DNA of 64,000 bases from Piromyces finnis finn (lineage: Eukaryota; Fungi; Neocallimastigomycota): NCBI GenBank assembly GCA_002104945.1, contig MCFH01000096.1:1-64000 (forward strand), given 5' to 3'. The notes below the pieces were generated by a model. The model saw only the letters and a list, made by a program, of their open reading frames with translations, made no database searches and was not told where the DNA came from. How positions within the stretch are numbered: the stretch's first letter is position 1; every line of letters begins with the position of its first letter. A program made the translations under genes and the position numbers. Shown here one piece after another: positions 14,320 through 50,140 of this stretch.

Positions 14320-14323
14320 AATT

Positions 14324-15155: not shown

Positions 15156-15179
15156 GAATGCCCTTCGTTAAAACTCAAG

Positions 15180-19157: not shown

Positions 19158-20068
19158 TGACCTTTTCTGGCCTTTTGTTTGTTTTCTTCTACTATGGCAC
19201 TCAGCTTAGGACAATGATATTGAAAGTGTCCCTTCTCGTTGCAAAAGTAGCAAGTTTTGATAGTTAAGTTTCTCATTTTCTCCGTCAACTCATTCATAGG
19301 ATCTTTCTTATCATTACCATAATTCGCTATTGTTGGCTTCTTGTTCCTTTCATAGCTATCTTCTTTTCTTTCATATTTATTTTTATATCTTTTATCAGAG
19401 TTAGAAGAGGTGGATACATCATAATTGTTAGCTTTATGACGATTTCTTAAATTTAGTCTGTCCCCATCTTCGGCAAGCTTGTAGGCTTCTGCTAAGGTAA
19501 CTTCTTTTTCCCTACGCACATTTTCCCAGGCTTTATAGTTAGGCTCAATGGAATCTAAGTAATCTTCAACATCTACTTTCCTTCTACGCTTCTTGTCTAG
19601 TTTGACATACAAGGAACGGTACCTTATGTTGAAGTCTTTTACTTTTTCATTCTTTTTGATTCGCATATCCCTAAGCTCCTTGAGAAGTTCTATTTGATCT
19701 TCCTTTACTCCATAAAATTCTTCTAACATAGTGACTATCTTTTTAAGGGAAGGGTAGTGAGCTCTTCTCTTTCCTCTACCTTCATCTTCTTCATCACTAT
19801 CTTCACTGTCTTCATCACTTTCGAAGTCCTTATTAGGATTCAACTCTTGAATAAGTTCATTTGGTGTTCCTGTAGTAGTAAACAAACAAGCTAGAAACAC
19901 CATTTTTGGACTTTTAACATCTTGAAGCATAGTCCAATACTTTAATTGACTATACCAAGTCTTAATGTCCAAATTATCTTCGGTTAATCTAGTGACATGC
20001 TTTAATTCCTTCATTAATTTAGCAAAGTCAATAGATTTATCAGCTCCCGTACTCATTTTTATATACAA
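19148..20068 (-). CDS. gag: gag of Gypsy C1 with CCHC zinc knuckle
   Basis: CYFCNEKGHFQYHC near the C-terminus. The true start is probably the ATG of MSTG. Confidence 0.9.
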   Translation of the reverse strand: MYIKMSTGADKSIDFAKLMKELKHVTRLTEDNLDIKTWYSQLKYWTMLQDVKSPKMVFLACLFTTTGTPNELIQELNPNKDFESDEDSEDSDEEDEGRGKRRAHYPSLKKIVTMLEEFYGVKEDQIELLKELRDMRIKKNEKVKDFNIRYRSLYVKLDKKRRRKVDVEDYLDSIEPNYKAWENVRREKEVTLAEAYKLAEDGDRLNLRNRHKANNYDVSTSSNSDKRYKNKYERKEDSYERNKKPTIANYGNDKKDPMNELTEKMRNLTIKTCYFCNEKGHFQYHCPKLSAIVEENKQKARKGHLN

Positions 20069-20448
20069 GTTTTAAATAAAGATAAAAATACAATTTTACA
20101 ATAATATTAAAGAATGAAACAAGTTTAAAAAAAAAATAATTTTCTTTTATAAGAATTTAAAAGAATGAATTACAACAATATTTGAAATATATTTAATTAA
20201 CAACACTAATAATTATTCTCTTTAGTTAAACTAGTAATACCAATATAAAATACTTCCTTAACTGCACCAATTAACAATATTAATTTCTCTCTATTAACTA
20301 TTTTAATTGTGCCTTGAAGTATATAACTTTTTATTATACTAGTATAACCCTCTTTTGAATTATTAACTATTTTAATTAAATAATAATACAAAAATAAATA
20401 TAAAAATAACTATAAAAATGTAGTGTGATATCAATATGTTATTATTAT

Positions 20449-20465
20449 CCCCGATATCTCCACCA
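20449..20465 (-). promoter_or_regulatory. PBS of Gypsy C1, complementary to a tRNA-Ala-type 3' end
   Basis: TGGTGGAGATATCGGGG; implied tRNA end ...TCTCCACCA has A73 and U70 (Ala identity). Confidence 0.8.
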
Positions 20466-20472
20466 TTAATTA

Positions 20473-21304
20473 TGCTACGGTTCAAATAAGATATCACAAA
20501 ACACTTGAATAGTTATAAAAATAAAAATTTATTTAATTTTAATTTTTATTCATTTAATTTATTTTTGATTTTTCAATTTTTAAAAATTTTCTCAAAAATC
20601 CTCGTACTTTTTCCAACTATCCATTATTTGAAATTTAATGGTTTTGGATAGCTAAGGATTTAAATTGATTTCATTCATAATATATGGATCATTCACTATA
20701 ACATATATTAATTAAATCCTTAATATATATTATGAATAATCTCTTAATATTTGAATAGAAAATTTTTTAATTTATAATTAATAAAATTTTAATTTATGAT
20801 ATGTGTAACATTTTTGCATATCATATATTATATATTTTATTATGACATATAATAAAATTATATTATTCAATTAATTATGCCCTTTTTTAGACATAAATAA
20901 TAATTTTTCTGTCGAGGTATCTTCTGTTTTGTGTGTAACAGTTGCCTCTTTTAGTAAAAATTATAATTAAATTCTATGTCATAATTTCAAATTATAAAAT
21001 ATTATACAATAAAGTTAATTAATAAAATAAACCTTAAATAATAATAAAATTTTGTAAAATTTATAAGTATAAAATATTATAAGTAATTATACTAATACTA
21101 ATAATAAAGGTCTTAAATAACTATATACAAATAATATAACTATATAATAAAAATATGAATAATTACTAGAAAAATGTATAAAAATTATATATTATAATTT
21201 TTATATTTTAAAAATAGAGTTAAACACTAGTAAGGAATATAAATAGTTGAAGGTTAATTCCTAAAATTCTAGCTAATTCAACTATTTATGTTCATTCCTT
21301 AACA
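20473..21304 (-). repeat. 5' LTR of Gypsy C1
   Basis: Same 832-bp sequence as 14324-15155. Confidence 0.95.
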
Positions 21305-21321
21305 AATTAAATTAATTATTA

Positions 21322-21403
21322 GTTACTTTGGCGGAGTGGTTAACGCGGTGGCCTGCTAAGCCATTTCCCTTTGGGAGCGCAGGTTCGAGTCCTGCAGGTG
21401 ACG
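21322..21403 (+). tRNA. tRNA-Ser(GCT)
   Basis: Acceptor GTTACTT/AGGTGAC, anticodon arm GTGGC-CTGCTAA-GCCAT, long variable arm, GGTTCGAGTCC T-loop; 82 nt. Confidence 0.97.
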
Positions 21404-21413
21404 AATAGTTATT

Positions 21414-21486
21414 GCGAAGTTGGCGCAGTCGGCAGCGCGTAAGTCTCATAATCTTAAGGTCGTGAGTTCGAACCTCACACTTCGCA
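21414..21486 (+). tRNA. tRNA-Met(CAT), elongator type
   Basis: Acceptor GCGAAGT/ACTTCGC + A; anticodon arm TAAGT-CTCATAA-TCTTA (U:U pair as in yeast elongator Met); GTTCGAAC T-loop; followed by TTTT. Confidence 0.96.
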
Positions 21487-24032
21487 TTTTATTATTGGGT
21501 TTATACTATATTTTAATTATTAAAAGTATTAAAGAAAGAAATTTAAAAAGTATTTCAATTACTTTAATATTTTTATTTTATAATCTATTTATTTTATTGC
21601 ATAATTATAATATGTCTTGACGTTATTAGTTTATAGATAATGATAAATAAATTGAAATGCTAATTTTATTTCTAATATATTTTAGATAATAATTAATTAA
21701 ATATATTTATTTAAATTATTTATTTAAATATAACTGCTTTAAAAGTATACATAGCTTTTAACTAAATGTTAATTAATAATGAAACATAAATTATAATTAA
21801 AAGTATAATTGTATAAATTATTTGTTTATTTAAAATACTATTAAGATCGAGTAATTGTTACATTATTTTTTTTTATTATTTATTTATTAATATTCAACTA
21901 AGAATATATTTATTATTTCTGTTATCTTTATTTTAATATGTAATTTAAATTATATTCATTATATAAAACTATATTAACAGTCAAAATTTATCAACCAGAA
22001 ACAATTTTTATTAAGGAAAGGCATAAAACTAATAAATTGATAAATTATTATGATTATATTTAAAGCTAATTTCAAATAGTGTCTTATTAATTCAATTCAA
22101 AAATTATTTCAAATGATTATTGGTAAAAAAATTTTAAAAAAAATTAATTTATTAAAAATTAAAGTCAATTATAATCCTTTAATAAAATAAATAATACATA
22201 AAATGAATAATATCCTCCAAAATTCACACACTACCGTCATTTTCTAAAAGAACTTAAACTATCTTTTCTTGCTCTAGCTTTCAGTTACATACTAATATTT
22301 ATAAGAGTTATAGTAATATAACATTTTGATTATTTAAATTAGTATAGAAGATATATGTTATAAGTCTATATTGGCTTGATAACTATTCATCACATTATTA
22401 CATTTTTTAATTAATATAATAATATTACTAAAAGTAAAATCTCAATATATACTTATTTATATGCCTATTTATATGGTTAATCATTATTTATGAAATAATA
22501 AACTATAAACTGTATTTACTATGAATATAAAAGTTGTCATTTTTTAAAACTTTTAAAATTAAATATTTATTTATTAAAATCTTCAAGATAGGGTTTAGAT
22601 AATTAGTAAGAATGAATTAGAAGCCATAAATATTTATTAATACTTTTATTGCTTTTTATTATTACAAATTTATATAACAAATGACTAATTATTAAATAAT
22701 TTATAATTTATTTTTAAAGTTATGACTTAAATTAATATATAATAATCTATATTACTTAATGTTAAATTAATTATATATTAAAATCAAATAATTTTTTAAG
22801 TTAAAATTAGAAAGCTATAAACATAGTTGTTTATACACAAGAAATAATTTTTATTATTAAAAACTATTGATGAATATTTTTAATTTAGAAATAGTTAAAC
22901 ATTACCCAAATAAAATGAATCATTTTAAAATATTAACTATGATACAATAATATAATGTAATATAAATAAAAATAGAAAAATAGAAATATTGTTTTAATTT
23001 TATTTAATAATTTAGTAAGTTTGTAGAATAAATTAGTAAAAACAATCTGGAATATATAATATATCACTTTCTGTATAATTTATAAAACTAAAACATATTA
23101 ATTTAGCATTTATTTATAATAAAGAAGGCATTAATAATATAATTTTTATTATCAATATATCAATAAGTAGTTTTATCTTTCATAAATATAAATGAATTTA
23201 TAATAGTTTATTTAAATAATAGTTTTATTTAGTTATTTAATTAAATAAAGCTTTATTATTTAATAGTTTAGGAGATTATTAATTATATTATGGTTATAAA
23301 ATATTTTATATCAGTATAAAACGTCTTTATTTACTTAATTTAAAAGAAAATTAAAAATAATTTAAAACGATTATTCTTAAATTACATAATCAAAATCATT
23401 AAATAAATTAGTTTTAACTAATCATAAATAAGAGATTTTACTTTCCTTTAAGAAATCAAAGTTCATAATTATAAAATAATTATAATATAATTATTTATTC
23501 ATATATCCACATCCACATATAGTTACATAAAAAAAAAATATTTTGTTGATAAAGTATAGTCATTATATGTTAAATAGTAATAACAATAATAATAATTGTA
23601 GTTGGAGTGAAACTCATTAATATATATTTTTGCTTTTTATATAAATATAATTTAAATTTCACACATTTTTCGACTTTGTTAAAATTATAATGAAATAATT
23701 TTATATTTTATTTACTATTAATTAATTATATAATTATATATTATTTAAATTTTTATGTATTAATTAAATTAATTATATGAAAAGTATAATTTTATTTAAT
23801 ATTATATAAATATATATTTTTTACTATTATTAAAATGTAGTTCTTTTCATAATATAAGAAAAGACATTATTAAATAACTTGTATTAAATAATAATAAATA
23901 TTAATAACAAATATTAATAAATAAATAATAATAAATAAATATAAAATAATATATATACATATTATACAAATATTTATTTATAAAGTGTTGGTGTTATATA
24001 AAATATTATAATAATAATATTTAATCATAAAA

Positions 24033-30278: not shown

Positions 30279-33200
30279 TTATTTTACAAAATTTTTATCT
30301 GTAAAATTTCTAATTTTTGTAGAATTTAAATATTTTGTGAGTGCATCAGCCAACATATCATTTGTGTTCTTATATTCTAGCTTTACTCTTTTATTTATAA
30401 TATTATCCTTGTTGAAGTAGTATTTTATTGAGATATGTTTGAGTTTTGGGTTGGCTTCTCCATTTTCAATAATTGCTTTGCTTGATTTGTTGTCCGTAAA
30501 TATTGTAATGATTATTTTTTGATTGAATAATTCCTTTATTAAGTTTCTCATCCATAAGACCTTTTTTACACATTCTGAGGTGCTAATGTATTATGCTTCT
30601 GCAGTTGATGTAGCAACTTTGGATTATTTTTCGAAAACCAGTAGATAGGAGAGTTTCCCATAAGTATTATATGACCAGATGTTGATTTTCTGTCTTTGGT
30701 GTTCCCCGCAAAATCTGCATTTGTATAGGCTGTAATAAAACCTTTTCCGTCGTATTTCAGTTTGTAATGAATTGTGTTGTGTAAATACTTAAGGATAATA
30801 AGGACACAATGCCAATCTGATACAGTAAGATTTTCACAAGATCTAGCAGCTTTGTGTACTGCAAAAGAAATATCCGGTCTGGTGCATTTTTCAAGGTAAA
30901 TGAGGGATCCTAATGCACTTTTATATGTTGTGGCGTCAATTTTTTCATCACGCATTTGTGGCTTGTCAATACAACATGGAGTATTACATCGATAAGTGTA
31001 ATTAGTGTTAATAATTCCAAAGTTTTGTAAAAGATTTTCAATAAAATTTCTTTGCGAAATAAAATAGGAGTAGCTAGATTTTTCAACAGTTATGCCTAAT
31101 AAGTAATGGATTTTTCCATAATTTGAAATATTAAATTTGTTATTGATCTTATTTATTATGGATTCGATGATGTTAATATTGCCACAGATGATCATATCAT
31201 CAATGTAAATACCAAGAATGCATATTGTATTATTGTTATGAGATTTTTTAAATATACATGGTTTTGATTTAAGCTGGTAGAAACCTGAATTAATGAGAAA
31301 ATTTGAAATGGTAATATACCATTGTCTTCCGGATTGTCGAAGACCATATAATGCTTTGTTGAGTAGCCAATATCCTTTATTGTAGTTCTTGTCACCGGGA
31401 GGTATTGTGGCGTAGATTTCTTTATCAAGTTTAGCGTTTAGATAAGCGGCTTTAATATCCAGTTGGTAAATTTCCCATTTAAGTTTAGCAGCAGTAGAAA
31501 TAATAAACAAACTATTAGAATTTAATGTTGGAGAATAGGTTAAGTCAAAATCGGTCCCGTAAACTTGAGTGAAACCTCTGGCTACGAGTCTGGCTTTATA
31601 TTTAGTGATATTATTATTTTCATCCCTCTTGATGGTGAATACCAATTTTATGGAAATTAATTTTCTTTCTTTGGGAATTTCGGGAACAAAAGTCATGATT
31701 TTATTAGAATATAAATTGTTAAGTTCTTCATTAATTTCATTGATCCAGTATGATTTATTGGAACACGTAGTGGCTTGTTTGTAATTAAATGGAATATCTG
31801 ATTCATATGTATACGTGGATTCTTCTAAATTTAAAACCAGTCTTTTGTTATCATTAAGCAGTGGTGAATCATATGGATGCTTTTTAGGGATATTGATGTT
31901 TGACTGTTCATTTATGTTACCTGAAATTGTTTTATTATCATTATTTGAAACATTTGAATCATTGTCTGAATCCTTGTAGTTAGTTTTATTTTCAAAAGTT
32001 GTATTAGCATTTTCATTTGTGGCGTCGTAGTTTTTATTAATATTATTGTTGTTGTTGGAAAAATTATTATTACAGTATTCGAATGTGGCGTTATTATTCA
32101 TGACATCATTAAAATTCTTATCCATTTGTTCATTGGTGTTATCAATCCCAGTATTGAGTCTTTCAAATATATTGTAGTGGTTGATATTTGTATTGTAGTT
32201 TGGATGATTGTTAGTGTTATACTGGTTATTGAACGTAAAATTTCCTGGCTCCTCTTCAAGAAAAACAGCTTCTTTTACTAAATGAATAGATTGATCACGT
32301 TTATCCATAATTATATAACAATTTGTGTCGAATTTTATTCCCAAGAATATGCCTTTTTGTGAATTAGTTTCAAATTTAGACGCTTTATTTTGAATCTTGC
32401 TATAGTAGGATACACAGCCAAATACTTTGATTTTATCAATTTTTACGGCTTTATTTTAGAAAATTTCATTTGGTATTAAATTTAAGATTCCCTTTCTTGG
32501 TGTAATGTTATACAGGTGATTTGTATAAATTACAGCATATGACCAGAAATCTAAGCTAAGTTTAGCCCAAAAAATTAAGGTCTTCGCAGAGTTGATAATG
32601 GTTTGGTTGAATCTCTCGGCAATACCATTATTCTCAGGATTATATGGTGGGGAAAATATTTTCGATACCGATTTTTCTACAATATTTCTTTATTCTTTTG
32701 TTGTTAAATTCACGTCCGTTATCACTTTTGAAAAATTTAATATTATTTTCAAAGTGATTATTTATGAATTTTAAAAAATTTAAAATTGTGTTGGTTGCTT
32801 CGGCCTTCTCTTTGAGTAAGCAAACCCAGGATTTTCTACTAAATTCATCAAGAAATGTGATGATATATTTCATATCATCTATTGATGTGGGTTTTATAGG
32901 TCCGATGATGTCAGAATGGATAGTTTCCAGGATATTAGATGCTTTTGGAGTAACTTTATTATGGGGTTTTGCCTTCAATTTTGATATTTTGCAATCTAGG
33001 CATTGGTCATTTTCCTTCGTTCTGAGTTCCAAATATTTGTTTAAATCTTCCTGGTAGTAGTGACCTAGACGACGATGCCATAAGTCTTGGTTAAAAGTTT
33101 CAGTGGAGCAAAATTGTTGATTAAGATTATTGAATTTTATCCTAATAACATTATTGCTGTCAGGTTCGTGTTTACTAATAACTTTGTCTGTATGGTCAGA

Positions 33201-33560
33201 CAAAATTAAGAGAACCTTACCATTTTGATTCTTTAACTGAGTATTAATACCGGCTATCGTTAGTTTTATTCCACTGATAAGATTTTTATTAACTTCATTT
33301 GATAAAAGTACTCTTTCTAAGACTATCACAGTTCCGTTTATGGCTCCGCGGTAAGTACCATGGCCCTCAAAAGTACAAGTAGAACCATTTGCACAGCTCA
33401 TAGTAATTTTTTCGTTAATGAAGTTTTCTAAGATCCCTTTGTTGTTCGTTATATGTTCACTTGCTCCAGTATCATAAGTCCATACTGATGTTGTGTAACC
33501 TTCATTTTGGTCATGTGATTTCCGAAAATTACATGAAAATATTTCTTCTCTATTTTCTAA
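30279..33560 (-). pseudogene. pol: Frameshifted Copia-2 pol: PR (~33480), IN (32640..33401), RT (30566..32344), RNase H (30279..30551)
   Basis: WTYDTGASEH, LWHRRLGH, HSDIIGP, KSDNGREF, YKARLVARGF, YIDDMII, KLKHISIKY; several frameshifts and stops. Confidence 0.92.
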
Positions 33561-34402
33561 TGGAAAATGTTTTCAAGGATTAAATCATCAAGTATATTTA
33601 TCACGTGGTTGACATTCTGATTGGTCAGTGTTTATGTTTGTGTAACATTTATTTTCAGGGATGGAAATTTTTGGATCATACATTTTTTCATTACTCTTAA
33701 TTTCATTTTCAATATTATCGGCAGAAGGTCCAAACATTGTATTGATTTCTTCAAAGCATGGAGTACTATCCGAGGTTGTCTCGTTCTCAATATTAGAACA
33801 ATATTTGTCGTCCTTTGATTTTCCTTTGTTTGGTTAAGTTTTATAATTTTCGTTAAATTTATTATTTTTCTTGGTTCTGGTTGAACGGCTGGGGTTATAA
33901 TAGCAATCCTTGGCCAAGTGTCCCGGAATGTCACAGATAACACAGTATTTGTTTCTGTGATATTGTTTTGTATTTCTTCTATTTCCATTTGAACGTTTTC
34001 CTTCTATATTGTCTATATCCATATAGTCATTGTTTGAATTTTTGAAGTTGTTGATGAATGGGTTATTATTTTTTCTTATGTTTCTAGGGTTAAAATTGCT
34101 ATTTCTTTGGTTGTGGGTTTGGTTATTATTGTATTCCATTTGGTAGAGAATAACTGTATATCTATCTTTTATAATTTCATATAGTGTTTCTGGTGTATAT
34201 TGGGAACTCATTAGTATTTTATCCTTAAGGATGTTTGGTAGAGCGTTGTACATAATTGTTATTTTTTCCATGTTTGATTTGTTCATGCATGAGTTTTCGA
34301 GTAAATTAAATAACTCCATAATCTCATTCATGACATTCATGGTTTCCTTAAGGTTGGTAGCCTTGAGAGATCCTAATCTTCTTAACCACTCTCCATGGTT
34401 AG

Positions 34403-34829
34403 TGTAACGAGAACTAGTGAGAACCACTAGGTTGTTGTAGGAAATAATAATAAATAAAATAAATAAATAAATAAAAACACAAAATTAGATAAACGATATT
34501 ATTTAGGATTTTATACTATTTTATTTATTATTATTCAATGTTAATAATAGCTCAAAGAGCATAAAATAAAAATAATACATGGTCATTTATATTCGTTAAT
34601 TCTAATTCTATAATACATGATTGGATTTTACATTAATATAAAATTTATCTATTCTATAATTATTCATACATTTAATTTAAATATAATTTATCTAACTATT
34701 CATTTAATTAAAATATAAATTATAAAAAGTAAATAATAGGATTCGAACCAGTGACAAAATCCATACTAAACCAAAGCCAGGTACCATTGAGCTATCCTAA
34801 TGGTTATAACGGTACTTGATATCGTTACA
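34403..34829. mobile_element. Solo LTR S1 (427 bp) with 5-bp TSD GTTAG
   Basis: 8-bp TIR TGTAACGA/TCGTTACA; GTTAG at 34398-34402 and 34830-34834; second copy at 44462. Confidence 0.9.
34724..34801 (-). promoter_or_regulatory. tRNA-type Pol III promoter (A-box TAGCTCAATGG, B-box GGTTCGAATCC, T5) inside LTR S1
   Basis: A-box T at 34794 and B-box second G at 34748 are 46 nt apart (45 in a standard tRNA); T5 at 34724-28; no cloverleaf. Function is not demonstrated. Confidence 0.7.
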
Positions 34830-35156
34830 GTTAGGAGTCATCCAGTTTGTACAAGCTCGAGTTTCTCCATCTTCTCATATGCGGACTCACAGTTCATAAT
34901 GTACCTTTTAACAGAGTCGGTACAATTTGTAAAAATGATAATTCCTGCGAGTGCATCATTTGGTTCAAATTTGCTTGGTTCATTGAATGTTTTGTAGTTA
35001 CTCTTGATGTAACCACCAAGCTGTTTGGCCCTTAAGTAGCCTTCAATTGTACAGTACCATATATCAAAGTTGGAACTGCCTTGTAATTTATCCCTTTCGC
35101 TTAATATGAATTCAGGCATTTTATTTATATTTTATAATATTTCTTTGTGAGCCAGT

Positions 35157-35170
35157 TGAGACTTTTAATC
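35157..35170 (-). promoter_or_regulatory. PBS of Copia-2, complementary to the anticodon arm of tRNA-Lys(UUU)
   Basis: GATTAAAAGTCTCA directly after the LTR CA is the reverse complement of TGAGA-CTTTTAA-TC. Confidence 0.7.
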
Positions 35171-35626
35171 TGTTAGAATTTTAGGTTTTTTAATATTTAC
35201 TTTATTATGGTAATTTATTAATATTTCATTACAAAGATTTAATGAACAATTACAAGTTTGTATTTATACTAAAATTTATGGCTTATGCTCTAATACATAC
35301 ATTATCAATACATTACATTATATTAAATACATTTTATTAATGAATAAGGTTTATAATAAAGTTTGAGATTTTCTAACAAATTTAGCTCTTTTCAATGTAT
35401 AAGAAAAAACGCGTTCCTATATACTTGTATTATGATAATAATAAATATTAATAAATAAATAGTTAAAATAAATATAAAACAATAAAAATTAATTATACAA
35501 ATATTTTTTTTATATTGTTTGTGTTATATATAATATCATAACTATTAATATAAAAATAATATAAAATATAATCTTTCAAATAATTATTAGTTAAATTAAC
35601 ATTAACAAAACATTAAGTAAAATTAT

Positions 35627-35698
35627 AGGGGCGTTCCGGATTTGAACCGAAGACCTATTGATCTGCAGTCAATTGCTCTACCGCTGAGCTAACACCCC
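35627..35698 (-). tRNA. tRNA-Cys(GCA)
   Basis: GGGGTGT/ACGCCCC acceptor, ATTGA-CTGCAGA-TCAAT anticodon arm, GGTTCAAATCC; 72 nt. Confidence 0.97.
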
Positions 35699-36407
35699 AT
35701 TCTTATTGTTGTCAAAAAGCGATTTTTTTATTAAAGAAAAGTGTGGTAAGCACACTAGTTATATTGTCAAAATCACAATTCATGAAATTTGACATTTCAT
35801 GAAATTTCATAATTTTGAATTAATAGTTAAATTAATTAAAATATTAATTTAATAATATTTTACTAATAATAGTTTATTTAATATAAATATTAATTGGAAA
35901 GCTATTTATTATCCGGAGATAAATAGAGTGTAACAATTAATTAATATTAAACAAACCAATTAGTAAAATAAGATTCATTTAAATAATTATTAATATTATT
36001 TTTAACAACTTATTAATATCGATATTTAAAGAAAATTATATTATTATTACTATTATATTTTATTAATATTTATATTTATATTATTATACATGTATAACTT
36101 AAATTATATTATTATTATACTTTATTAATATCAACATTATATTAAAAATGAAGTATAAATAAGTTGAACAAAGAACAACTTTAAGAAGTTCTTTGTGAGA
36201 TTATTATACTCATTTTTATATAGTAAATTCAATATTTAAAATTAATAATTATCATTTACTTATATTATAAAAATTAAATAAAATATTTCTTAAAAAACTA
36301 TATTTATTACTCTTTTACTTATAAAAATTTATTATTTACTATATAATTAAGCCTATCCTAACCTAGTAGACTTAATTATAATTCTAAATCCACTCTAACT
36401 CTTGACA

Positions 36408-36417
36408 ATAATCTCAC
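36408..36417 (+). promoter_or_regulatory. Self-priming-type PBS of Gypsy B
   Basis: ATAATCTCAC (plus the terminal A of the LTR) is the reverse complement of GTGAGATTATT at 36195-36205 inside the LTR. Confidence 0.75.
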
Positions 36418-36441
36418 CTTAACTTTGGTTACTACCTTAGG

Positions 36442-37542
36442 ATGGCAGAACAAAACTTTGCTAGCTCTTGGCAAACTATGGATGAAGTTAATCAACTCCG
36501 CGAAGATGCTAAAACTACTGCTGTAGACATTATGAACAGCGTTCAAGAAAACTTTGCTACTATTAGTCAAGTTAAAGACTTTGAAAAACATATTGAATCT
36601 CAGTTTCAAGAAATTAAAAGAAATACTGCTAATTTCGCACAAGTTTTGGAATCGGTCTCTAACAATATCAACACCATTCAAGAGTATTTAAATAAGAATG
36701 GAAAACCAAGTGGTGGTCAGCCAGACCTAACCCCTTCAGTTGCCCCATCTACATCTACAAAATATGATTTGGATTTTGATGTAATAATGAGATCAAAATA
36801 TTCCACTCCAATAAATCAAGTTCCAGACCCAGGTCTTTTTTCTGGTGATCCTCATGAAACTGAACTATTCTGTCAAATTTGTGAAGATACTTTTAGCACC
36901 TATCCTAATAAACATATGATGGAAGAAGCCAAAATTAATTTTGTTAAAACAAGATTAAGAGGAATTGCTAGAACTTGGTATTTAACAAGATACAGTGGAA
37001 ATACCCATCCCTCTACTATGTTCGAATTATTAGGAGAATTAAAAAACGCTTTTCCAAATGTTTCAAGCCGTAAATTAGCTAAGATCAAGCTAAGTAAATT
37101 GAAACAAACATATGGAAAAATTAATGAATATATGGAAGAATTTAGATCATATATTCAATATTTTAACTGGGATCAAGAGGCTGTTACTCTTATGTTTTAT
37201 ACTGGTCTTCATCCTAAGTATCAAGAAGATATTGAAAGATTAGATGACTTTCCTACTACTCTCGAAGCTATTTTCACAAGATGTATTTTATTTGAACAAA
37301 ACAATGTTTCAAATAAAAAGTTAAACCAAATTAATAATAAAAGCCATGGAAGAAAAAATTCATTTTATAATAACAATAACAATAATTATAATAATAATAG
37401 AAACAATTATCAAAAATATCACAATAATAATAATAACAATAATAATTTAAAATCTAATTATTCAACTAATAATAATGGTGGTAATAATAATAATAATTAT
37501 TCCACTACAAAAACCCAAAAAATTTCTTCAAAAAATTTTTAA
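36442..37542 (+). CDS. gag: gag of Gypsy B
   Basis: Clear paralogue of the A gag (FDLDHDVIMR / YDLDFDVIMR; QVPDPG); no zinc knuckle. Confidence 0.92.
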   Translation: MAEQNFASSWQTMDEVNQLREDAKTTAVDIMNSVQENFATISQVKDFEKHIESQFQEIKRNTANFAQVLESVSNNINTIQEYLNKNGKPSGGQPDLTPSVAPSTSTKYDLDFDVIMRSKYSTPINQVPDPGLFSGDPHETELFCQICEDTFSTYPNKHMMEEAKINFVKTRLRGIARTWYLTRYSGNTHPSTMFELLGELKNAFPNVSSRKLAKIKLSKLKQTYGKINEYMEEFRSYIQYFNWDQEAVTLMFYTGLHPKYQEDIERLDDFPTTLEAIFTRCILFEQNNVSNKKLNQINNKSHGRKNSFYNNNNNNYNNNRNNYQKYHNNNNNNNNLKSNYSTNNNGGNNNNNYSTTKTQKISSKNF

Positions 37543-37577
37543 ACAATGAACACCATAAGACGTCAATGGATGTTCAT
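37530..37577 (+). promoter_or_regulatory. -1 frameshift signal of Gypsy B
   Basis: Overlapping A AAA AAT / A AAT TTT before the stop; -1 frame open; stem ATGAACA-CCAT / ATGG-A-TGTTCAT at 37546-37577. Confidence 0.8.
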
Positions 37578-40500
37578 AATACACCAAAAATTATTTATTA
37601 TAATTTCCCATCTCTAGAGAACAAAGAAAATCCCAATTTAAATTCATTTCTAACCTTTAATTCATATATTCCTAAAGAATTTCTAAATAACAACTCTAAT
37701 TTTATTACCAATTCTCCAATAACCTGTAATTCAATACTTGATTCAGGTTCCTCATGTAACTTTATTTCTACCATATTTGTAGAAAAATATAATTTAATTA
37801 AAAGAAAATTAAAAAACAAATTGATTATAAAAGGTATTAGTGGGTTTACTACTGATATCAATAATTATGTTTATTTAAAATTTCAATTAAAAATTTTTAT
37901 CAAAAATAAATTTTATTTTATATCTTTTAAAGAAAAATTCTTAGTTTCAGAACATATTCCTATGGATTTATTATTTGGAAATAAATTCATGAAGAAATTT
38001 AAGATTCATTTTAATTATAAAAATAATCATTTATATTGTAATAATTTTAAACACTTCAATAATAAGAATTTAAAAATTTTTTCAAAAAATTTAAAAATTT
38101 CTCATTCTAAAAAAGATTTTAATAATTCATTTTCCGATAATACTAATAATAATTCTACTAATTTCTCTCATAAATCTAATCGTCAAGTTAAAGATAATAA
38201 TTCTACGTCTTTTAATAAGAGTGATATCAATTATTTTATCCATTCATTTTTATCTGAAAATGTCGAAAATTTTGAAGATGATGAAGAAAATGACCTAACC
38301 CTTATCATGGATGATATCCCTAATGAATATAAAGATCTTGCTGTTGTTTTCAGCAAATCAAAAGCTGATAAGTTACCTCCACACCGTTTAACTGATTGTA
38401 AAATAGTCCTAGAAAATGACGCCACTTTACATTATGGACCTATCTATCCTTTATCAAGACAAGAGGAAGAAGCCTTACAAGAATATATTAATGAAAATCT
38501 TAAAAAAGGTTTTATTAGGCCCTCTGAATCTCCTGCAGGTTACCCTGTTGTTTTCCAGAAGAAAAAAGATGGCTCATTAAGGGTCTGTATTGATTACAAA
38601 AAGTTGAACGCTGTAACAGTAAGAAATTCGTACCCTTTACCTTTAATTTCAGATATCATTGAAAGGGTTAGGGGTTCAAAAATTTTCACTAAATTGGACT
38701 TGAGATCAGCTTATAATTTGATAAGAATAAAAGAAGGTGATGAATATAAGACTGCTTTTAGAACAAAGTTTGGTCATTACGAATATTCAGTAATGCCATA
38801 TGGATTAAAAAATGCTCCAGCAATATTTCAATCATTCATAAATTCAATATTACGCGAATATTTGGATAAATTTGTTATTTTATACATGGATGATATTTTA
38901 ATTTTCTCAGAAAATCTCAACGATCATATCAACCATGTAAGATCTGTTTTAGATAAATTAATACAAAACAACTTATATGCAAAATTTGAAAAATGTGAAT
39001 TTCATAAAAATGAAGTTGAATTCTTAGGTTTCACTATTTCAGGTAATGGTATCTCTACTGATCCAAAGAAGATCGAAGCTATTAAAGAATGGCCTAGACC
39101 AAAATGTGTTAAAGATGTTCAACGCTTTCTTGGTCTTTGTAATTATTATAGAAGGTTTGTTAATAATTTTGCCAAAATCGCCAAACCTTTACATAATTTA
39201 ACTAGGAAAAATGTTAAGTTTCATTGGAATAAGATATGTGATGATGCTTTCGTAAATTTACAAAATAAATTAATTACCTCTCCCGTTTTAGTTTTTCCTG
39301 ACACTAATAGGCCGTTTATAGTAGAATGTGATGCCAGCAATTTCGCAATAGGTTCCGTTTTATCTCAATATGATGATGATAAAAAACTACATCCTGTTGC
39401 TTATTTTTCCAGAAGTTTAAATGATACAGAAAGGAACTATTCTATTACAGATAAAGAACTTCTTTCTATTAAATCTGCTTTTTCGGCTTGGCGACATCTA
39501 CTTTTAGGTGCTAAATTTAAAGTAAAGGTTTATACAGACCACCGCAATTTACTTTATACTTTAGGTGGAAAAATTCAAAATCAACGTCAACATCGTTGGC
39601 ATCTCTTCTTTCAAGAATATGATTTTGAATTAATTTATCGCCAAGGAAGAAAAAATGGTAAGCCAGATAGTCTCTCTAGAAGACCTGATTATAATTCTGG
39701 TAATGAACAAATAAAACCTGAGCATATTTTAGATATAAAAAATGTTAAAAACATTCCATGTTTTGTGGGAATTCTTAGTGACTTTATTGATAAAGTTATC
39801 GAATATACAAAAAAGATAATACTGCAAACGATATTAGATTATATTTTGCACCAAATAATGCTAATCAAGGTTATTTTTATAGACCTTTTAGAAAAATGAA
39901 TAAATTCAAGATTCAAAATAATATGATTCTTTATAATAATTTAATATATATTCCTGAAGCTTTAAGATTAGAAGTACTTATGCGATACCATGAAAATCCT
40001 GCTGCTGGTCATTTGGGTATTAAAAGAACTGAAGAATTAATTACTAGAAACTATTGGTGGCCAAAAATTCATAAAGATGTAACTGAATTTGTTAATTCTT
40101 GTGAAACTTGTACTAGAAACAAATTCAATAAACACAAAAAATATGGTCCTTTACAACCTTTAGAAACTCCTGATAGACCATGGCGTTCTGTTGAAATTGA
40201 CTTTTTATGTGGTTTACCTGATTCTAAAGGATATACTGTTCTAATGGTTACTGTAGATAGATTTTCAAAAATGATTCATTTAGTTCCTTTTAAGAAAATA
40301 CCTGATGCTAAACAAACAGCTACAGCTTTTATTAAAAATATATTCAAACTTCATGGATTACCTTCTGATATTTATACTGATCGCGGTTCTCAATTTACTA
40401 GTGATCTTTGGAATAGTTTAATGGAAGAACTTAAAGTTAAAACTAAAATTGCTACCACTGATCATCATGAAACGGTCGGGCAAGTTGAAAGATGTAACTC

Positions 40501-41245
40501 TTTTATTGAACAATATCTCCGCTGTTATTCAAAGTCCTATTATCATGATGATTGGGTTGAATGGATTCACTTAGCCGAATTTGTTTATAACAATTCTATT
40601 AATGAGTCTACCAAACAAAGTCCTTTCTTTATTAACTATGGATTCCACCCTCCTGTTGATGATGTTTTCCTTTATGACAAATCCTATACTAATAATAATT
40701 TTATTAGAAATGTTTGTGATAATTTTAATTATGTTAAAGAAGTTTTATTTAGAGCCAAGGATTTATATAAAAAACATGCCGATAAGAAAAGGATGTCACC
40801 TCCTATATTTAAAGTTGGCGATAAAGTTTGGATTCAAGCTCCTCCATCCTTTTCTACGGAAGAAACTCCAAAACTTTCTCCTTGTAAATATGGACCCTAT
40901 AAAGTTTTATATGTTTTGGAAAATAACAATTATAAAATAGATATACACAACTCTCCTTTCCCAAAACATCATCCAATCTTCCATATTTCGGAACTTGAAC
41001 CTTTTATTCCTACCCCTTCAAGATTTTTATCAAGATCAAAGGATCCCGAATCAATTAAAGACATCATTGAGATTGCGGGATTTCGAACTAATTATAAACT
41101 TAAACGGTATGAATACAAAATTAGATACAAATACCGTTCTCAATATAATTGGGTTCCTTCTAGTGAAGTTGAAGATAACCCAAGAAACCAAAATATCTTC
41201 TTATTATATTTAAAGAACAATAGGAAGCCTATTGATATCGCTTAT

Positions 41246-41251
<6 letters not shown>
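37566..41251 (+). CDS. pol: pol of Gypsy B (PR-RT-RH-IN-chromodomain-like), split by one 1-bp deletion at 39809-39814
   Basis: ILDSGS, YMDDIL, ECDASN, IEIDF-type IN motif, TDRGSQF, KYGPYK, C-terminal YEYKIRYK...NWVPSSEV. Adding one A to the A6 run restores alignment to A. Confidence 0.92.
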
Positions 41252-41288
<37 letters not shown>

Positions 41289-42686
41289 AGAGAAAGAGAG
41301 AGAGAATGAAAAAAAAAATGAGAAAACTATTATAATACAAAATTACTTCAATTTAACCCATCACAGATTTAAAAATTGAAATTTCAAAAATTTTTATATT
41401 CACTATTTTTTAATTATAAAATTTATTTTTCAGCTTATTATTATTAATATTTTTAATATCAAATTTTAAAAATTTCAAAAAACATAAAAAACCCTTTAAA
41501 ATCAAAATTTAAAATTTCAAAAAATTCAAAATTTCAATTATGACAGTTGTACAACATAAAAAATTTCAAAAACACATTTTTTATACAATACATATATGTA
41601 TTTCATAACAAAATTTCATTTTTACCAATTTTTGACAACTTTTGAAATTTCGCGAAATGGCCATTTAAAATTCATTCCTCCATCCTCATGTGACCATTTC
41701 GAAATTTCAAAAATTTTGAAAATATTAAAATTTCAATATTTTAAATTCAATATAAGATATTCTACTATCAAAAAATTGTCTAGTATCCAATTTTAGTGGA
41801 AGGGCGTTGTCAAAATCACAATTCATGAAATTTGACATTTCATGAAATTTCATAATTTTGAATTAATAGTTAAATTAATTAAAATATTAATTTAATAATA
41901 TTTTACTAATAATAGTTTATTTAATATAAATATTAATTGGAAAGCTATTTATTATCCGGAGATAAATAGAGTGTAACAATTAATTAATATTAAACAAACC
42001 AATTAGTAAAATAAGATTCATTTAAATAATTATTAATATTATTTTTAACAACTTATTAATATCGATATTTAAAGAAAATTATATTATTATTACTATTATA
42101 TTTTATTAATATTTATATTTATATTATTATACATGTATAATTTAAATTATATTATTATTATACTTTATTAATATCAACATTATATTAAAAATGAAGTATA
42201 AATAAGTTGAACAAAGAACAACTTTAAGAAGTTCTTTGTGAGATTATTATACTCATTTTTATATAGTAAATTCAATATTTAAAATTAATAATTATCATTT
42301 ACTTATATTATAAAAATTAAATAAAATATTTCTTAAAAAACTATATTTATTACTCTTTTACTTATAAAAATTTATTATTTACTATATAATTAAGCCTATC
42401 CTAACCTAGTAGACTTAATTATAATTCTAAATCCACTCTAACTCTTGACATATATTAATTAATAAATATAATACGCTTTCCTATTGAAGGCGTAAAGCTA
42501 ATAATATTTATATAAAGAAATTTAAATAATATTTTTATTTTAGCAATAACTTAATATCAGCATATATTAAGTTATTAAAAATATTAAAATTTTTAAAGTT
42601 TTAGGTTTTATAGGAGTTTATAAATTTTATTAACTTTAAGTTAAAAAAATTACTAACGCTAAAGCTTCGTAATTTTTGTCAATTTT

Positions 42687-44461: not shown

Positions 44462-44804
44462 TGTAACGAGGAACTAGTGATAACCACTAGGTTGTTGTAG
44501 GAATTAATAATAAATAAAATAAATAAATAAAAACACAGAATTAAATAAATATTATTATTTGGATTTTATATTATTTTATTTATTATTATTGAATGTTAAT
44601 AATAGCTCAAAGAGCATAAAATAAAAAATAATTCATGGTTTTTATATTCAATATATCTATTCTAAATTACATGATTGGTTATTACATAAAAATATAACAA
44701 TATTAATTTTATAAAAAGGAAACAGTCAGATTCGAACCAATGACAAAATCCATATCAGACTACGACCAGTACCATTGAACTATCAAAGCCGTTATAACGA
44801 TACT
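44462..44804. mobile_element. LTR S2 (diverged copy of S1), interrupted 13 bp from its end
   Basis: Starts TGTAACGAG; aligns to S1 up to ...ATAACG(G/A)TACT. A-box TAGTTCAATGG (T at 44782) and B-box GGTTCGAATC (second G at 44737) on minus, 45 nt apart, then T5. Confidence 0.88.
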
Positions 44805-45510
44805 TGTTAAGGAACCAACAAATAATGTTATTCTTGTCATAATTAATGATTATGACCTAATCCATTATTGTTCCTAAATGTATGAAAACTTTACAATATT
44901 CTTATTTGTAAATTAATGTATACACTTAAATTATATTTAAAATTATTAATAATTATTTTTATTGAACTTAAATTTTATTTTATTAAACTTAAAAATTAAT
45001 TTAGTAATAATAATATATTGAAAATTATAGTTTATTGAACTTTTAGTTTAATTTATCAAGTTAATGAATTTTTATTAATTAAAATTATGAATAATATTTC
45101 TGTAAAATAGTAAAATTCTTTAGTTAAATATATTTAAAGTAAACTTTTAATGTATGTTAATCAATTTAATAATATGTATAAATATTTATTATAATAGTAA
45201 TGTAATTTTATTATTCATTTAAAAGTAATTTAAATACTAAAATTAATGTAAATAATTAAAGACTAATTCTTTTAATTAACACTACTTAATTTTTTACAAA
45301 AAGTATAAAAAGGTGTATATTATAAGAATTAGAGAATAGACAGATATTTTTATTTTTATTTTTATTTTATTTTATAATTTTATATTAATATCTTAATAAA
45401 ACAATTTTATTAATAAAACAATTTTTCTTATTTCATTTTAATATTATTTTTGAGTATTAATAAATTTATTAATATTTTATAAATAAAAGTAAATTCCTCG
45501 AACCGTAACA
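44805..45510 (+). mobile_element. Solo LTR C' (706 bp; C-related) with 4-bp TSD TACT
   Basis: TGTTAAGGAA...GAACCGTAACA termini like C; TACT at 44801-04 and 45511-14. Confidence 0.85.
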
Positions 45511-45514
45511 TACT

Positions 45515-48500
45515 TGTTAAGGAATGAACATAAATAGTTGAATTAGCTAGAATTTTAGGAATTAACCTTCAACTATTTATATTCCTTACTAGTGTTTAAC
45601 TCTATTTTTAAAATATAAAAATTATAATATATAATTTTTATACATTTTTCTAGTAATTATTAATATTTTTATTATATAGTTATATTATTTGTATATAGTT
45701 ATTTAAGACCTTTATTATTAGTATTAGTATAATTACTTATAATATTTTATACTTATAAATTTTACAAAATTTTATTATTAAAATAGTTATAGGTATTTTA
45801 TTATTATTTAAGGTTTATTTTATTAATTAACTTTATTGTATAATATTTTATAATTTGAAATTATGACATAGAATTTAATTATAATTTTTACTAAAAGAGG
45901 CAACTGTTACACACAAAACAGAAGATACCTCGACAGAAAAATTATTATTTATGTCTAAAAAAGGGCATAATTAATTGAATAATATAATTTTATTATATGT
46001 CATAATTAAATATATAATATATGATATGCAAAAATGTTACACATATCATAAATTAAAATTTTATTAATTATAAATTAAAAATTTTTCTATTCAAATATTA
46101 AGAGATTATTCATAATATATATTAAGGATTTAATTAATATATGTTACAGTGAATGATCCATATATTATGAATGAAATCAATTTAAATCCTTAGCTATCCA
46201 AAACCATTAAATTTCAAATAATGGATAGTTGGAAAAAGTACGAGGATTTTTGAGAAAAATTTTAAAAATTGAAAAATCAAAAATAAATTAAATGAATAAA
46301 AATTTAAAATTAAATAAATTTTTATTTTTATAACTATTCAAGTGTTTTGTGATATCTTATTTGAACCGTAGCATAATTAATGGTGGAGATATCGGGGATA
46401 ATAATAACATATTGATATCACACTACATTTTTATAGTTACTTTTATATTTATTTTTGTATTATTATTTAATTAAAATAGTTAATAATTCAAAAGAGGGTT
46501 ATACTAGTATAATAAAAAGTTATATACTTCAAGGCACAAATTAAAATAGTTAATAGAGAGAAATTAATATTGTTAATTGGTGCAGTTAAGGAAGTATTTT
46601 ATATTGGTATTACTAGTTTAACTAAAGAGAATAATTATTAGTGTTGTTAATTAAATATATTTCAAATATTGTTGTAATTCATTCTTTTAAATTCTTATAA
46701 AAGAAAATTATTTTTTTTTAAACTTGTTTCATTCTTTAATATTATTGTAAAATTGTATTTTTATCTTTATTTAAAACTTGTATATAAAAATGAGTACGGG
46801 AGCTGATAAATCTATTGACTTTGCTAAATTAATGAAGAAATTAAAGCATGTCACTGGATTAACCGAAGATAATTTGGACATTAAGACTTGGTATAGTCAA
46901 TTAAAGTATTGGACTATGCTTCAAGATGTTAAAAGTCCAAAAATGGTGTTTCTAGCTTGTTTGTTTACTACTACAGGAACACCAAATGAACTTATTCAAG
47001 AGTTGAATCCTAATAAGGACTTTGAAAGTGATGAAGACAGTGAAGATAGTGATGAAGAAGATGAAGGTAGAGGAAAGAGAAGAGCTCACTACCCTTCCCT
47101 TAAAAAGATAGTCACTATGTTAGAAGAATTTTATGGAGTAAAGGAAGATCAAATAGAACTTCTCAAGGAGCTTAGGGATATGCGAATCAAAAAGAATGAA
47201 AAAGTAAAAGACTTCAACATAAGGTACCGTTCCTTGTATGTCAAACTAGACAAGAAGCGTAGAAGGAAAGTAGATGTTGAAGATTACTTAGATTCCATTG
47301 AGCCTAACTATAAAGCCTGGGAAAATGTGCGTAGGGAAAAAGAAGTTACTTTAGCAGAAGCCTACAAGCTTGCCGAAGATGGGGATAGACTAAATTTAAG
47401 AAATCGTCATAAAGCTAACAATTATGATGTATCCACCTCTTCTAACTCTGATAAAAGATATAAAAATAAATATGAAAGAAAAGAAGATAGCTATGAAAGG
47501 AACAAGAAGCCAACAATAGTGAATTATGGTAATGATAAGAAAGATCCTATGAATGAGTTGACGGAGAAAATGAGAAACTTAACTATCAAAACTTGCTACT
47601 TTTGCAACGAGAAGGGACACTTTCAATATCATTGTCCTAAACTGAGTGCCATAGTAGAAGAAAACAAACAAAAGGCCAGAAAAGGTCATTTAAATTAGAT
47701 AGTGGGAGAAGAAGCACTCCCAGTAATCCAAAAATAGCTTCACTTAATAACAGTTCAGTTGATAATAATGAGTACTCTGAATATTCTGAGTATTCTGACT
47801 TATCAGATAATGAAGAAATATCTTCTATTGAAGATAAAATTATTGCTGCAGCTAAAAGAAAAGCTAATGATGAAGAAGACTCTTCCAAGAAAAGAGTACA
47901 AAAATCATTAAAAGAAGACCCAAGACCAATAGTTACCCCTGCTACTAGGAAGCAACAAGAACGTGAACTCAGTAATGAGAGTTTAGAATCAGGTTCACCA
48001 TCACAACCCAAGAACCAACTTGACACGTCTGTTCTGAGTCAACCTAATATTAACAAGGAAAAAGAGAAAAGTAAAAGACTCAGAGAAAAACAAAGAAGTA
48101 AACCACCAACCCCCATAAATAAAGACGAAAGAGAAGAAAACGAAGATATGGAGGTCAGTATTGATACGGAAGATAAAGTAGAAGTAGAAAAAGCTAAAAA
48201 GAAAAATACAGATATTCTACCGACGTTATTGAAAATGACTAAAGATAAAGAAAAAGATAAAACTAAAGAGGAGAAAGTCACACGTAATATCCAAATGAGA
48301 GGTGATACCAGTGATTATGATATTTTTGAAGATTTAAACACAGCTAAATGTGATATTACTTATGGACAGTTATTTAATGTATGCCCAAAAATAAGAACAC
48401 AACTTTCCCAAGGACTAAAGTTAGAGAAAGTACTAGGCAAGGTATCAGGTGCATTAAATAACATAGTAGCTACTACAACCTTATTAAATAATATCAACCA

Positions 48501-50140
48501 TGACTATATAAGTAAGAATAATGAAGCTTCAGAAGAAGATATAGCAATGGTGGATGCGACTGTGGATGGGATACCAGGAAAACTACTGGTGGATACGTGT
48601 AGTAACTTAAATGTTATTACATCTTCTTTTTACAAAAGACTACCAAAGGAATATGAAGTGGTAGGAATAAGCAAAGGACGTATTCGACTAGCTACTACTG
48701 ATGAAGAATACTCTGAGGGTACTGTGGTGCGTATACCAGTTAGAATAGGAGAGGTAGAACTAGTGGTTGACTTCAGAATACTTGAAAAAGAAGAACCGTT
48801 CTATGATATGTTAATAAATTATAAAACTCAAGTAGATAATTTATTATATATAAATCCAGTAACCAAGAGCTTATGTCAAGTGAAAGAAAGAGGTGTAGTA
48901 GAAGAAATAGTACCTATCAATAACCAATATTATAATGAAGGAAAATTGGTATGTACTATTAAGAAGATACCAGATGGAGATACTAAAAGCTTGAAGTCTA
49001 TTGAAGGTTTACCACCTCAGGAGTATATACACAATGAGATATTCTTGAACACCTTACCAAAAGATAAACGGAAAGAAATACTCCGACTTTTGGAAGAAAA
49101 CTTAGAGATTATTGCGACGTCTTCTGAGGAATTAACGCCTTCTAAATTATCACCACATAAAATAAATCTAAAGGCTGGTGTAAAACCAGTTAAACAAAGA
49201 GCTTATAGGTTAACTAAATTTAAATCAGATATACTAAAAGAAGAGTTAACTAAGCTAATAGAAAAAAAGTTAATAGAGCCGTCCTATTCAGAATGGTCCT
49301 CCCCTGTAGTTCTGGTTCCAAAACATAATGGTAAGTGGAGAATGTGTGTGGACTATAGGAGAGTGAACGACCTCACGGAAAAGGACTCTTATTCACTCCC
49401 CTATATTGATGAAATATTTGATAGTCTGAACGGAGCCAAAATATTCACTACTATGGACTTATATTCAGGTTATCATCAAATTTCTATGCATGAGGAAAGC
49501 ACTGAGGTTACTAGTTTTACTACCAAGTTTGGTAACTATCAGTTTAAGGTCATGCCGTTTGGGTTAACTAATGCACCAGCAACTTTTCAGAGGGAAATGA
49601 ATAAGATATTATTTCCTTTAATAGGAAATTGTGTATATAATTTTATTGATGATGTACTCATATATTCCAAGAGTGTGGAAGAACACATGGAACATATTAA
49701 GAGAGTATTTGAAATATTGAAAGAAAATGAATTAAAAATAAATCTTGAGAAATGTAGTTTTATGAAGGAAGAAGTAAATGTATTAGGTCACAGGTTATCT
49801 ACTAAAGGTTTGAGTCCTTTGGAAAGTAAAATAGAAGCCATAAGGAAGTGGGAAGCTCCAGGAAATATTCATGAGTTACGTTCGTTTTTGGGTGCAGTAG
49901 GATATTATCGAAATTTTATTCCTAATTATTCTCAAGTAACCGCGCCCTTATGTGAGTTATTAAAGAAAAATGTACGATATAAATGGGAAGAAAAACATGA
50001 AAAAGCATTTAAAGTATTAAAAGAAAAACTGATAAACGCTCCCATTTTAAAGTTTCCTGAATTTGATAAGCCTTTTATCATACGTACGGACGCGTCGTAT
50101 GAAGGAGTGGGTGGTGTTTTATTACAAGAAGATGAAACTA
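45515..50140 (+). mobile_element. Gypsy C copy 2, truncated in RNase H (5' LTR 45515-46373; PBS 46381-97)
   Basis: Near-identical to C1; its LTR is ~27 bp longer; homology ends at ...GATGAAACTA 50140. Confidence 0.93.
46778..47698 (+). CDS. gag: gag of Gypsy C2
   Basis: Near-identical to 19148..20068. Confidence 0.9.
   Translation: MYIKMSTGADKSIDFAKLMKKLKHVTGLTEDNLDIKTWYSQLKYWTMLQDVKSPKMVFLACLFTTTGTPNELIQELNPNKDFESDEDSEDSDEEDEGRGKRRAHYPSLKKIVTMLEEFYGVKEDQIELLKELRDMRIKKNEKVKDFNIRYRSLYVKLDKKRRRKVDVEDYLDSIEPNYKAWENVRREKEVTLAEAYKLAEDGDRLNLRNRHKANNYDVSTSSNSDKRYKNKYERKEDSYERNKKPTIVNYGNDKKDPMNELTEKMRNLTIKTCYFCNEKGHFQYHCPKLSAIVEENKQKARKGHLN

Follow-up and report, generated by a model that had tools for sequence, protein, structure and literature searches.

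The locus considered here raises the question of why a solo long terminal repeat (LTR) contains the promoter boxes of a tRNA gene, and whether the RNA polymerase III (Pol III) machinery has ever made use of them. The LTR, which we call S, lies in a window of 64,000 nucleotides from Piromyces finnis (contig MCFH01000096.1, positions 1 to 64,000). The window has about 22% G+C and is dense in retrotransposons. We examined the anatomy of S, its copies in the genome, the elements that have inserted beside it, and the insertion of the same elements beside genuine tRNA genes.

Results

The S element and its copies in the genome

S is a solo LTR of 427 bp at window positions 34403-34829, given here on the plus strand as written in the first-pass annotation of this DNA, which need not be the sense of a parent element. 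It starts with TGTAACGA and ends with TCGTTACA. Its TG..CA termini are inverted over 8 bp, and the 5-bp duplication GTTAG stands on the left (34398-34402) and on the right (34830-34834), in agreement with the earlier description of a bona fide solo LTR with an 8-bp terminal inverted repeat and a 5-bp target duplication. The insertion has split a minus-strand Copia reading frame. When nested inserts are read through, perfect 5-bp duplications are also seen at two more copies, GTTAT on contig C227 and GTAAA on C170. Integrase-type ends with a 5-bp duplication, as in Helenus-type elements, were accordingly found at three loci, and on the basis of these perfect duplications S was made by an integrase.

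Near the LTR end opposite the tRNA-like part, S carries the hairpin CTAGTG-AGAAC-CACTAG (34414-34430, plus strand). The first-pass annotation had described this hairpin as conserved, and we can confirm it: 10 of 14 copies have it intact, and in two divergent copies (L009 and L012) it shows paired changes that are apparently compensatory. An LTR at window 56249 that has the common terminus TGTCACGAATACTAGTG was tried as a guide to the orientation of S and was dropped; the gag and protease frames downstream of it belong to another element, whose own LTRs begin at 57139 and 61041.

We searched the genome assembly (56,455,805 bases in 232 contigs) and recovered about 10 copies of S and four or five copies of a diverged form, S2, plus fragments, which gives about 14 independent S/S2 copies. 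The S2 copy of the window lies at 44462-44804 on the plus strand and is without the tip. Every S/S2 copy is solitary. Their left flanks are unrelated, apart from those of a duplicate of the window locus on C206, and the copies are therefore separate integrations. The duplicate is part of a segmental duplication in which window 32903-35710 and G000:C206:10894-13700 are 99.25% identical over 2.8 kb, including S and a tRNA-Cys gene; the similarity stops 12 nt before tRNA-Cys, from where the two copies continue with different retroelements. On C230, an S copy and an S2 copy lie inverted to each other and 494 bp apart (G000:C230:42539-43794, loci L003/L013). This S copy (C230:42539-42965) is not bordered by a target duplication and may thus have arisen by recombination or represent one end of an element that was lost; no reading frame was found in its flank.

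A second S LTR in the same orientation was found neither among the 48 genome matches nor within about 17 kb of nine copies. Likewise, the genome hits and the flanks of about 17 kb of the nine copies yielded no full-length or TRIM parent of S with paired LTRs and a short internal region. A sequence common to the S flanks at L010, L012 and L015 was considered as the internal region of S and rejected, since it turned out to be another LTR, about 1 kb long and abundant. This LTR family occurs in arrays at G000:C79:831524-849360 and also on C74 and C47; the period of 5.57 kb with two LTR copies each suggests tandem LTR-internal-LTR arrays.

A tRNA-type module inside the LTR

Read on the minus strand, S begins with 35 nt that precede the A box; the B box comes next and, 10 nt beyond it, TTTTT. 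The A box TAGCTCAATGG (34784-34794) agrees with TRGCNNAGTGG at 10 of 11 positions, the B box GGTTCGAATCC (34739-34749) agrees with GGTTCGANTCC at 11 of 11, and the T5 run (34724-34728) takes the terminator position of a tRNA gene. The corresponding features of S2, again on the minus strand, are found at 44772-44782 (A box), 44728-44738 (B box) and 44713-44717 (T5). From start to start, the two boxes are 45 nt apart in S and 44 nt apart in S2. The first-pass annotation had recognised an A box and a B box at tRNA spacing followed by T5, which we can confirm, and its values of 46 and 45 nt reflect a difference in counting. The distances within the module of S are those of an intron-less tRNA gene plus its terminator. 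Considering that this DNA is AT-rich and that T runs are common in it, the T5 run is by itself weak evidence of a terminator. The boxes of S are no chance match: the window contains six B-box-like 11-mers where 0.9 would be expected, and all six are located in three real tRNA genes or in S/S2.

Since all copies carry the module although their loci are unrelated, it belongs to the LTR. When the genome was searched with the module itself, all 12 matches fell within S/S2 copies. Accordingly, the module is neither a free SINE nor a neighbouring gene, and a candidate SINE headed by it was rejected on the same result.

We then consider whether the module could be a tRNA gene. ARAGORN at default settings and Rfam RF00005, at the gathering threshold and even at E<=10, called no tRNA on S, and relaxed ARAGORN was inconsistent, with another call for each S copy; the two programs found only tRNA-Ser, tRNA-Met and tRNA-Cys in the window. 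The predicted RNA of 85 nt folded no better than its shuffled versions (z = -0.15). These results are in line with the earlier observation that the acceptor, D and T stems do not pair, and judged by the cloverleaf the module is not a tRNA gene. The stretch 34724-34808 on the minus strand is therefore best described as a predicted Pol III unit of about 85 nt, a putative decayed copy of a tRNA gene that has no cloverleaf. In the Rfam scans, no 5S rRNA match was found in S, and the boxes of S are of the tRNA type. A tRNA-derived stretch of the LTR that carries both boxes, as in Helenus and other TRIMp3 elements, is thus present in S. No RNA run was found to contain the S stretch. The only sequencing run with part of S, of unknown type, contains 7% of the sampled words from the stretch, with contigs that cover the left junction and a diverged copy; the contigs with pieces of S have a depth of 2-3, too low to speak to transcription.

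Conservation of the boxes and the possibility of a replication promoter

The first-pass annotation had proposed that the boxes are conserved while the intervening sequence changes. On the one hand, S and S2 differ at 1 of 22 box positions and, outside the boxes, at 15 of the other 64 positions of the module (Fisher P = 0.06), and this part of the proposal stands as a weak contrast between subfamilies. On the other hand, over the 14 independent copies the B box reached a conservation of 0.88 and the A box one of 0.83, compared with an LTR mean of 0.835. Since G/C positions decay faster in this genome, they were also compared alone; the box G/C sites (0.82) showed no excess over all G/C sites (0.80) in the decayed copies (permutation P = 0.34). 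The comparison of boxes with flanks over all copies, which the annotation had named as a check on its own proposal, thus placed the boxes no higher than the LTR average among decayed copies. Extra conservation of the boxes over the rest is weakly supported and borderline between the subfamilies. Decayed solo LTRs hold little information on past selection.

The contrast between the subfamilies would suit a Cassandra-like replication promoter, in which Pol III would transcribe from the 5' LTR through a short TRIM to the 3' LTR, with the boxes under selection for transposition. This model was shown for Cassandra and, as far as the account in Kojima 2024 (PMC10886601) extends here, has been proposed for Helenus/TRIMp3. 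However, neither paired LTRs nor a short internal region was found among the genome matches. Also, the T5 run 10 nt after the B box and further T5 runs predict that a Pol III transcript would stop at about 85 nt, and such a transcript could hardly be an element genome. In addition, the S LTR is longer than any Helenus LTR in the portion of PMC10886601 considered here (427 bp against at most 323 bp). We consider this reading rather unlikely.

Nested insertions at the tip of S

The complete tip on the tRNA side is found only in the window/C206 copy and in the C230 copy. In 11 of 14 copies, the homology to S ends within a zone of 10 nt, and a foreign TG..CA terminus begins there, 17-26 nt ahead of where the A box starts and 10-19 nt before the notional tRNA +1. 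The corresponding zone of the window copy, at 34811-34820 on the minus strand, is uninterrupted. The missing tip was recovered further on, at a distance of 3.0 kb on C170, 3.7 kb on C227, 6.6 kb on C79 and 15.7 kb on C181. The inserts on C79 and C181 are bordered by a duplication of their own, GATAC, and the duplications of the inserts on C170 and C227 are not clean. From the recovered tips and the duplications, the foreign termini are nested insertions and not an alternative end of the LTR. In the remaining 400 bp or so of S, no insertion was found in any copy.

The inserted elements belong to several families. Their termini read ...TTCTTACA, ...TTGTATCA, ...CCTTAACA and ...TCTTTACA, and both orientations occur. 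Beside S2 in the window, the start of a foreign LTR (TGTTAAGGAACC..., 44805-44830, plus strand), a related LTR, lies 22 nt upstream of the A box. The window also contains a third S-like fragment (45440-45514, minus strand), which has lost the A box by deletion but still has the B box; a Ty3-like element adjoins this fragment at the equivalent place. LTR elements inserted about 10-20 nt upstream of a Pol III-transcribed unit, in either orientation and with their own duplication, are what marks a target of Ty3-type integration, and this is what was found at S.

Two structural features of the visiting elements may be added here. The insert by S on C79 (L041/L035) is a non-autonomous LTR element of about 2 kb with no reading frames; its 578-bp LTRs are 97.8% alike, its internal part has 836 bp, and one of its LTR ends carries a long (ATT)n expansion. 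Where LTRs abut S and tRNA genes, their ends start with palindromic units of 38-50 bp, TGTAA-arm-loop-arm'-TTACA, and the sequence of the arms varies by family while their complementarity is kept (L031:2507-2548; L002:2813-2856; L004, L007, L009, L012 and L013 next to S). These units may be integrase sites, hairpins or miniature elements.

The same elements at genuine tRNA genes

Ty3 and similar elements integrate just before tRNA genes, at a short fixed distance, in both orientations and with 5-bp duplications, and are tethered there by the Pol III initiation complex. We searched the genome for the pattern 'TTCTTACA, 5-32 nt, A box, 25-55 nt, B box' and obtained 20 matches, against 0 in the reversed control. 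The same pattern starting with 'TTGTATCA' gave 6 matches, again against 0. Each of the 26 matches has the sequence of a normal tRNA gene (Trp, Gly, Cys, Ser, Glu and others), and the element ends lie 11-22 nt upstream of the mature tRNA 5' end. Measured to the A box, the distance is 18-29 nt at tRNA genes, which matches the 17-26 nt in S. One of these tRNAs was verified by Rfam (C156:96907-96978, 68.5 bits), and the tRNA-Cys type among the matches is that of the window gene called by both Rfam and ARAGORN, with its C206 copy called by ARAGORN.

The window itself provides a full-length element for comparison. A Ty3/gypsy element at 14320-21304 on the minus strand, with 837-bp LTRs that are 99.9% alike, the duplication AAATT, and protease, reverse transcriptase, RNase H and integrase, ends 17 nt upstream of tRNA-Ser (21322-21403). 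A truncated copy of it at 45515-50140 on the plus strand, 98.9% identical to the element beside tRNA-Ser, touches the third S-like fragment with its 5' end. Similarly, the LTR of about 1 kb that stands beside S at L010, L012 and L015 also stands 19 nt upstream of tRNA-Cys on C206. The same families are thus observed at S and at tRNA genes, at the same distance.

Other arrangements around the tRNA genes of the window were noted. The genes tRNA-Ser and tRNA-Met lie 10 nt apart (21322-21487), like tandem tRNA pairs elsewhere in the genome. A Ty3/gypsy element of the chromodomain type (35765-42450; region 35627-35765), whose 643-bp LTRs have one mismatch and which is bordered by the duplication TATAT, lies 66 nt upstream of tRNA-Cys, inside a 55-nt remnant whose ...TTGACA end is 11 nt from the tRNA.

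The insertions at S could also be explained if S were an inert relic, that is, a dead tRNA pseudogene that binds no Pol III factor, and if the integrases preferred the palindrome GATATC, which the LTR tip of S contains, or LTR ends as such. The boxes conserved no better than the LTR average, the degenerate boxes that several interrupted copies now carry, and the duplication GATAC common to two inserts would agree with this explanation. However, the same families insert at the same distance before many real tRNA genes whose upstream sequence is unrelated. The junctions in S are scattered over 10 nt, with at least four terminus types and both orientations, and their distance from the A box is that seen at tRNA genes. 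Accordingly, we consider an inert relic improbable. Considering the degenerate boxes of the interrupted copies, any occupancy of S by Pol III factors must be placed in the past.

Discussion

We consider it likely that S is the solo LTR of a small old family, whose relic tRNA module was recognised as a target by Ty3-like elements through Pol III factors. According to this interpretation, an S LTR would have acquired a copy of a tRNA gene or of a tRNA-derived SINE. The cloverleaf would then have decayed, while the A box, the B box 45 nt downstream and the T run at the terminator position were kept. TFIIIC on the boxes may have placed TFIIIB about 10-20 nt upstream of the notional tRNA 5' end, which is 9-19 nt inside the LTR tip, and Ty3-like retrotransposons that integrate at Pol III start sites may have taken this TFIIIB complex as their target. 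If the boxes of S assembled an initiation complex, the visitors would have handled S as a tRNA gene, and repeated insertion at one place would be expected. We consider that the module was probably bound by the Pol III initiation machinery and was live at least when the insertions happened. This occupancy, and by extension a capacity for a Pol III RNA of about 85 nt, we infer from the insertions. For the live promoter that the first-pass annotation had proposed, the insertions are thus evidence of an indirect though independent kind. Such a putative RNA is judged to be a by-product without tRNA function.

The first-pass annotation had suggested that S carries its own TFIIIC insulator to survive in silenced chromatin, and that the module would be kept for this shielding. 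tDNAs and B-box sites can act as chromatin barriers, and the occupancy that the insertions indirectly support would agree with such a role. However, all copies are solo LTRs in which nothing is left to protect. Instead, 11 of 14 copies had their LTR tip severed by insertions that the module drew, and this speaks against its helping S to survive. The suggestion is thus unsupported, and we give an insulator very little probability.

Equally improbable, in our estimation, is that the module is a relic of a primer tRNA, in which the tRNA-like stretch would be antisense and would come from a reverse transcriptase that copied the whole primer tRNA beside U5. With the plus strand as the sense strand, the module would indeed lie antisense near the U5 end with the complement of the T arm first, like an extended primer site. 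However, this presupposes one particular orientation of S, and no CCA complement follows the acceptor position. Also, the T5 run stands exactly at the terminator site of a tRNA gene, which argues for a copy derived from a gene or a SINE and not from a mature tRNA.

For the recognition of the relic module by tRNA-targeting elements, which we prefer, the elements nested in S and near tRNA genes offer the closest parallel to known integration systems. LTR elements that target tRNA genes include Ty3 in Saccharomyces cerevisiae, Tj1 in S. japonicus and DGLT-A in Dictyostelium, and Ty3 in yeast also hits tRNA relics. The P. finnis visitors resemble Ty3 in being of the Ty3/gypsy type, in ending 11-22 nt upstream of mature tRNA 5' ends, in making 5-bp duplications and in using both orientations; this likeness concerns the visitors and not S itself. 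The targeting of tRNA genes by such elements is the subject of reviews and primary papers (PMC4600332, PMC6101501, PMC5006619). As for LTRs with a Pol III promoter, foamy viruses carry Pol III-driven microRNA units in the U3 of their LTRs, with type-2 promoters and defined miRNA products. S shares with them a type-2 promoter in the LTR of a retroelement, while foamy viruses are vertebrate retroviruses with miRNA products. S also resembles a tRNA-derived SINE (SINE2) in having a decayed tRNA head with A and B boxes. However, a SINE2 begins directly with its promoter, has a tail that is A-rich or of LINE type, and makes variable duplications, while the ends of S are TG..CA and its duplication is always 5 bp long. 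Also, 35 nt of S precede the A box, and roughly the first 20 nt would remain outside the transcript, unlike in SINE2.

The comparison with Cassandra made in the first-pass annotation is apt, in that both place an internal Pol III promoter and a terminator of a small-RNA gene inside the LTR. The two differ in that S has a type-2 (tRNA) promoter and Cassandra, a plant family, a type-1 (5S) promoter; full-length elements and transcripts are documented for Cassandra, while S is present as solo copies with a predicted promoter. A closer precedent than Cassandra is found in Helenus/TRIMp3, as described in the parts of Kojima 2024 (PMC10886601) on which we draw. There, Helenus elements are miniature LTR retrotransposons with a tRNA-derived LTR sequence in which the A and B boxes are conserved, from rust fungi (Pucciniales), a few Agaricomycetes, several animal phyla and Selaginella. 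Together with Cassandra and Ajax they form TRIMp3, for which an origin by SINE insertion into an LTR is proposed (PMC10886601). Fungal members have 5-bp duplications, some families are represented only by solo LTRs or fragments, most cannot encode a working tRNA, and the promoter function is stated to be unvalidated (PMC10886601).

Measured against this portion of PMC10886601, S appears in kind to be a Helenus-type (TRIMp3) LTR in the features tested, known here from solo LTRs only. Like Helenus, it keeps boxes A and B in a tRNA-derived stretch of the LTR that yields no working tRNA; like fungal Helenus it makes 5-bp duplications, and like some Helenus families it is represented by solo LTRs only. 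On the other hand, the host of S belongs to the Neocallimastigomycota, while Helenus in fungi has so far been described there from Basidiomycota only. The termini of S resemble those of a Ty3-like LTR family, not Copia, and the genome hits and the flanks of about 17 kb of nine copies contained no copy with the order LTR-PBS-PPT-LTR. Recurrent targeted insertion before the module is a feature of S, of which the same portion of PMC10886601 makes no mention for Helenus.

If the relic module of S was recognised in the way that we prefer, S-type LTRs might have acted as mobile decoy tRNA genes. They would have offered harmless insertion sites to the tRNA-targeting Ty3-like families and seeded nested clusters of transposable elements, and they may have spared real tRNA genes. 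We put this forward only tentatively and with low confidence. In a stronger form, the module may have been kept by selection on the element or the host, for its decoy role or for a small RNA.

Conclusions

LTRs with a tRNA-derived promoter have been known since Kojima 2024 (PMC10886601), as far as that work is drawn on here, and the idea of S is therefore not new in kind. Within the same scope, S appears to extend LTRs with a built-in tRNA-type promoter, as in Helenus/TRIMp3, from Basidiomycota to an early-diverging fungal phylum. For annotation, modules of the S type are liable to be missed or to be misread as tRNA pseudogenes. The family also offers a natural experiment on promoter use, in which the integration footprints of tRNA-targeting retrotransposons would mark the S module as a site of the Pol III machinery. 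In terms of genome architecture, it suggests that one mobile element can redirect the landing sites of others. If the decoy interpretation is true, one retrotransposon family would spread landing sites for Pol III in a gene-poor, AT-rich fungal genome.
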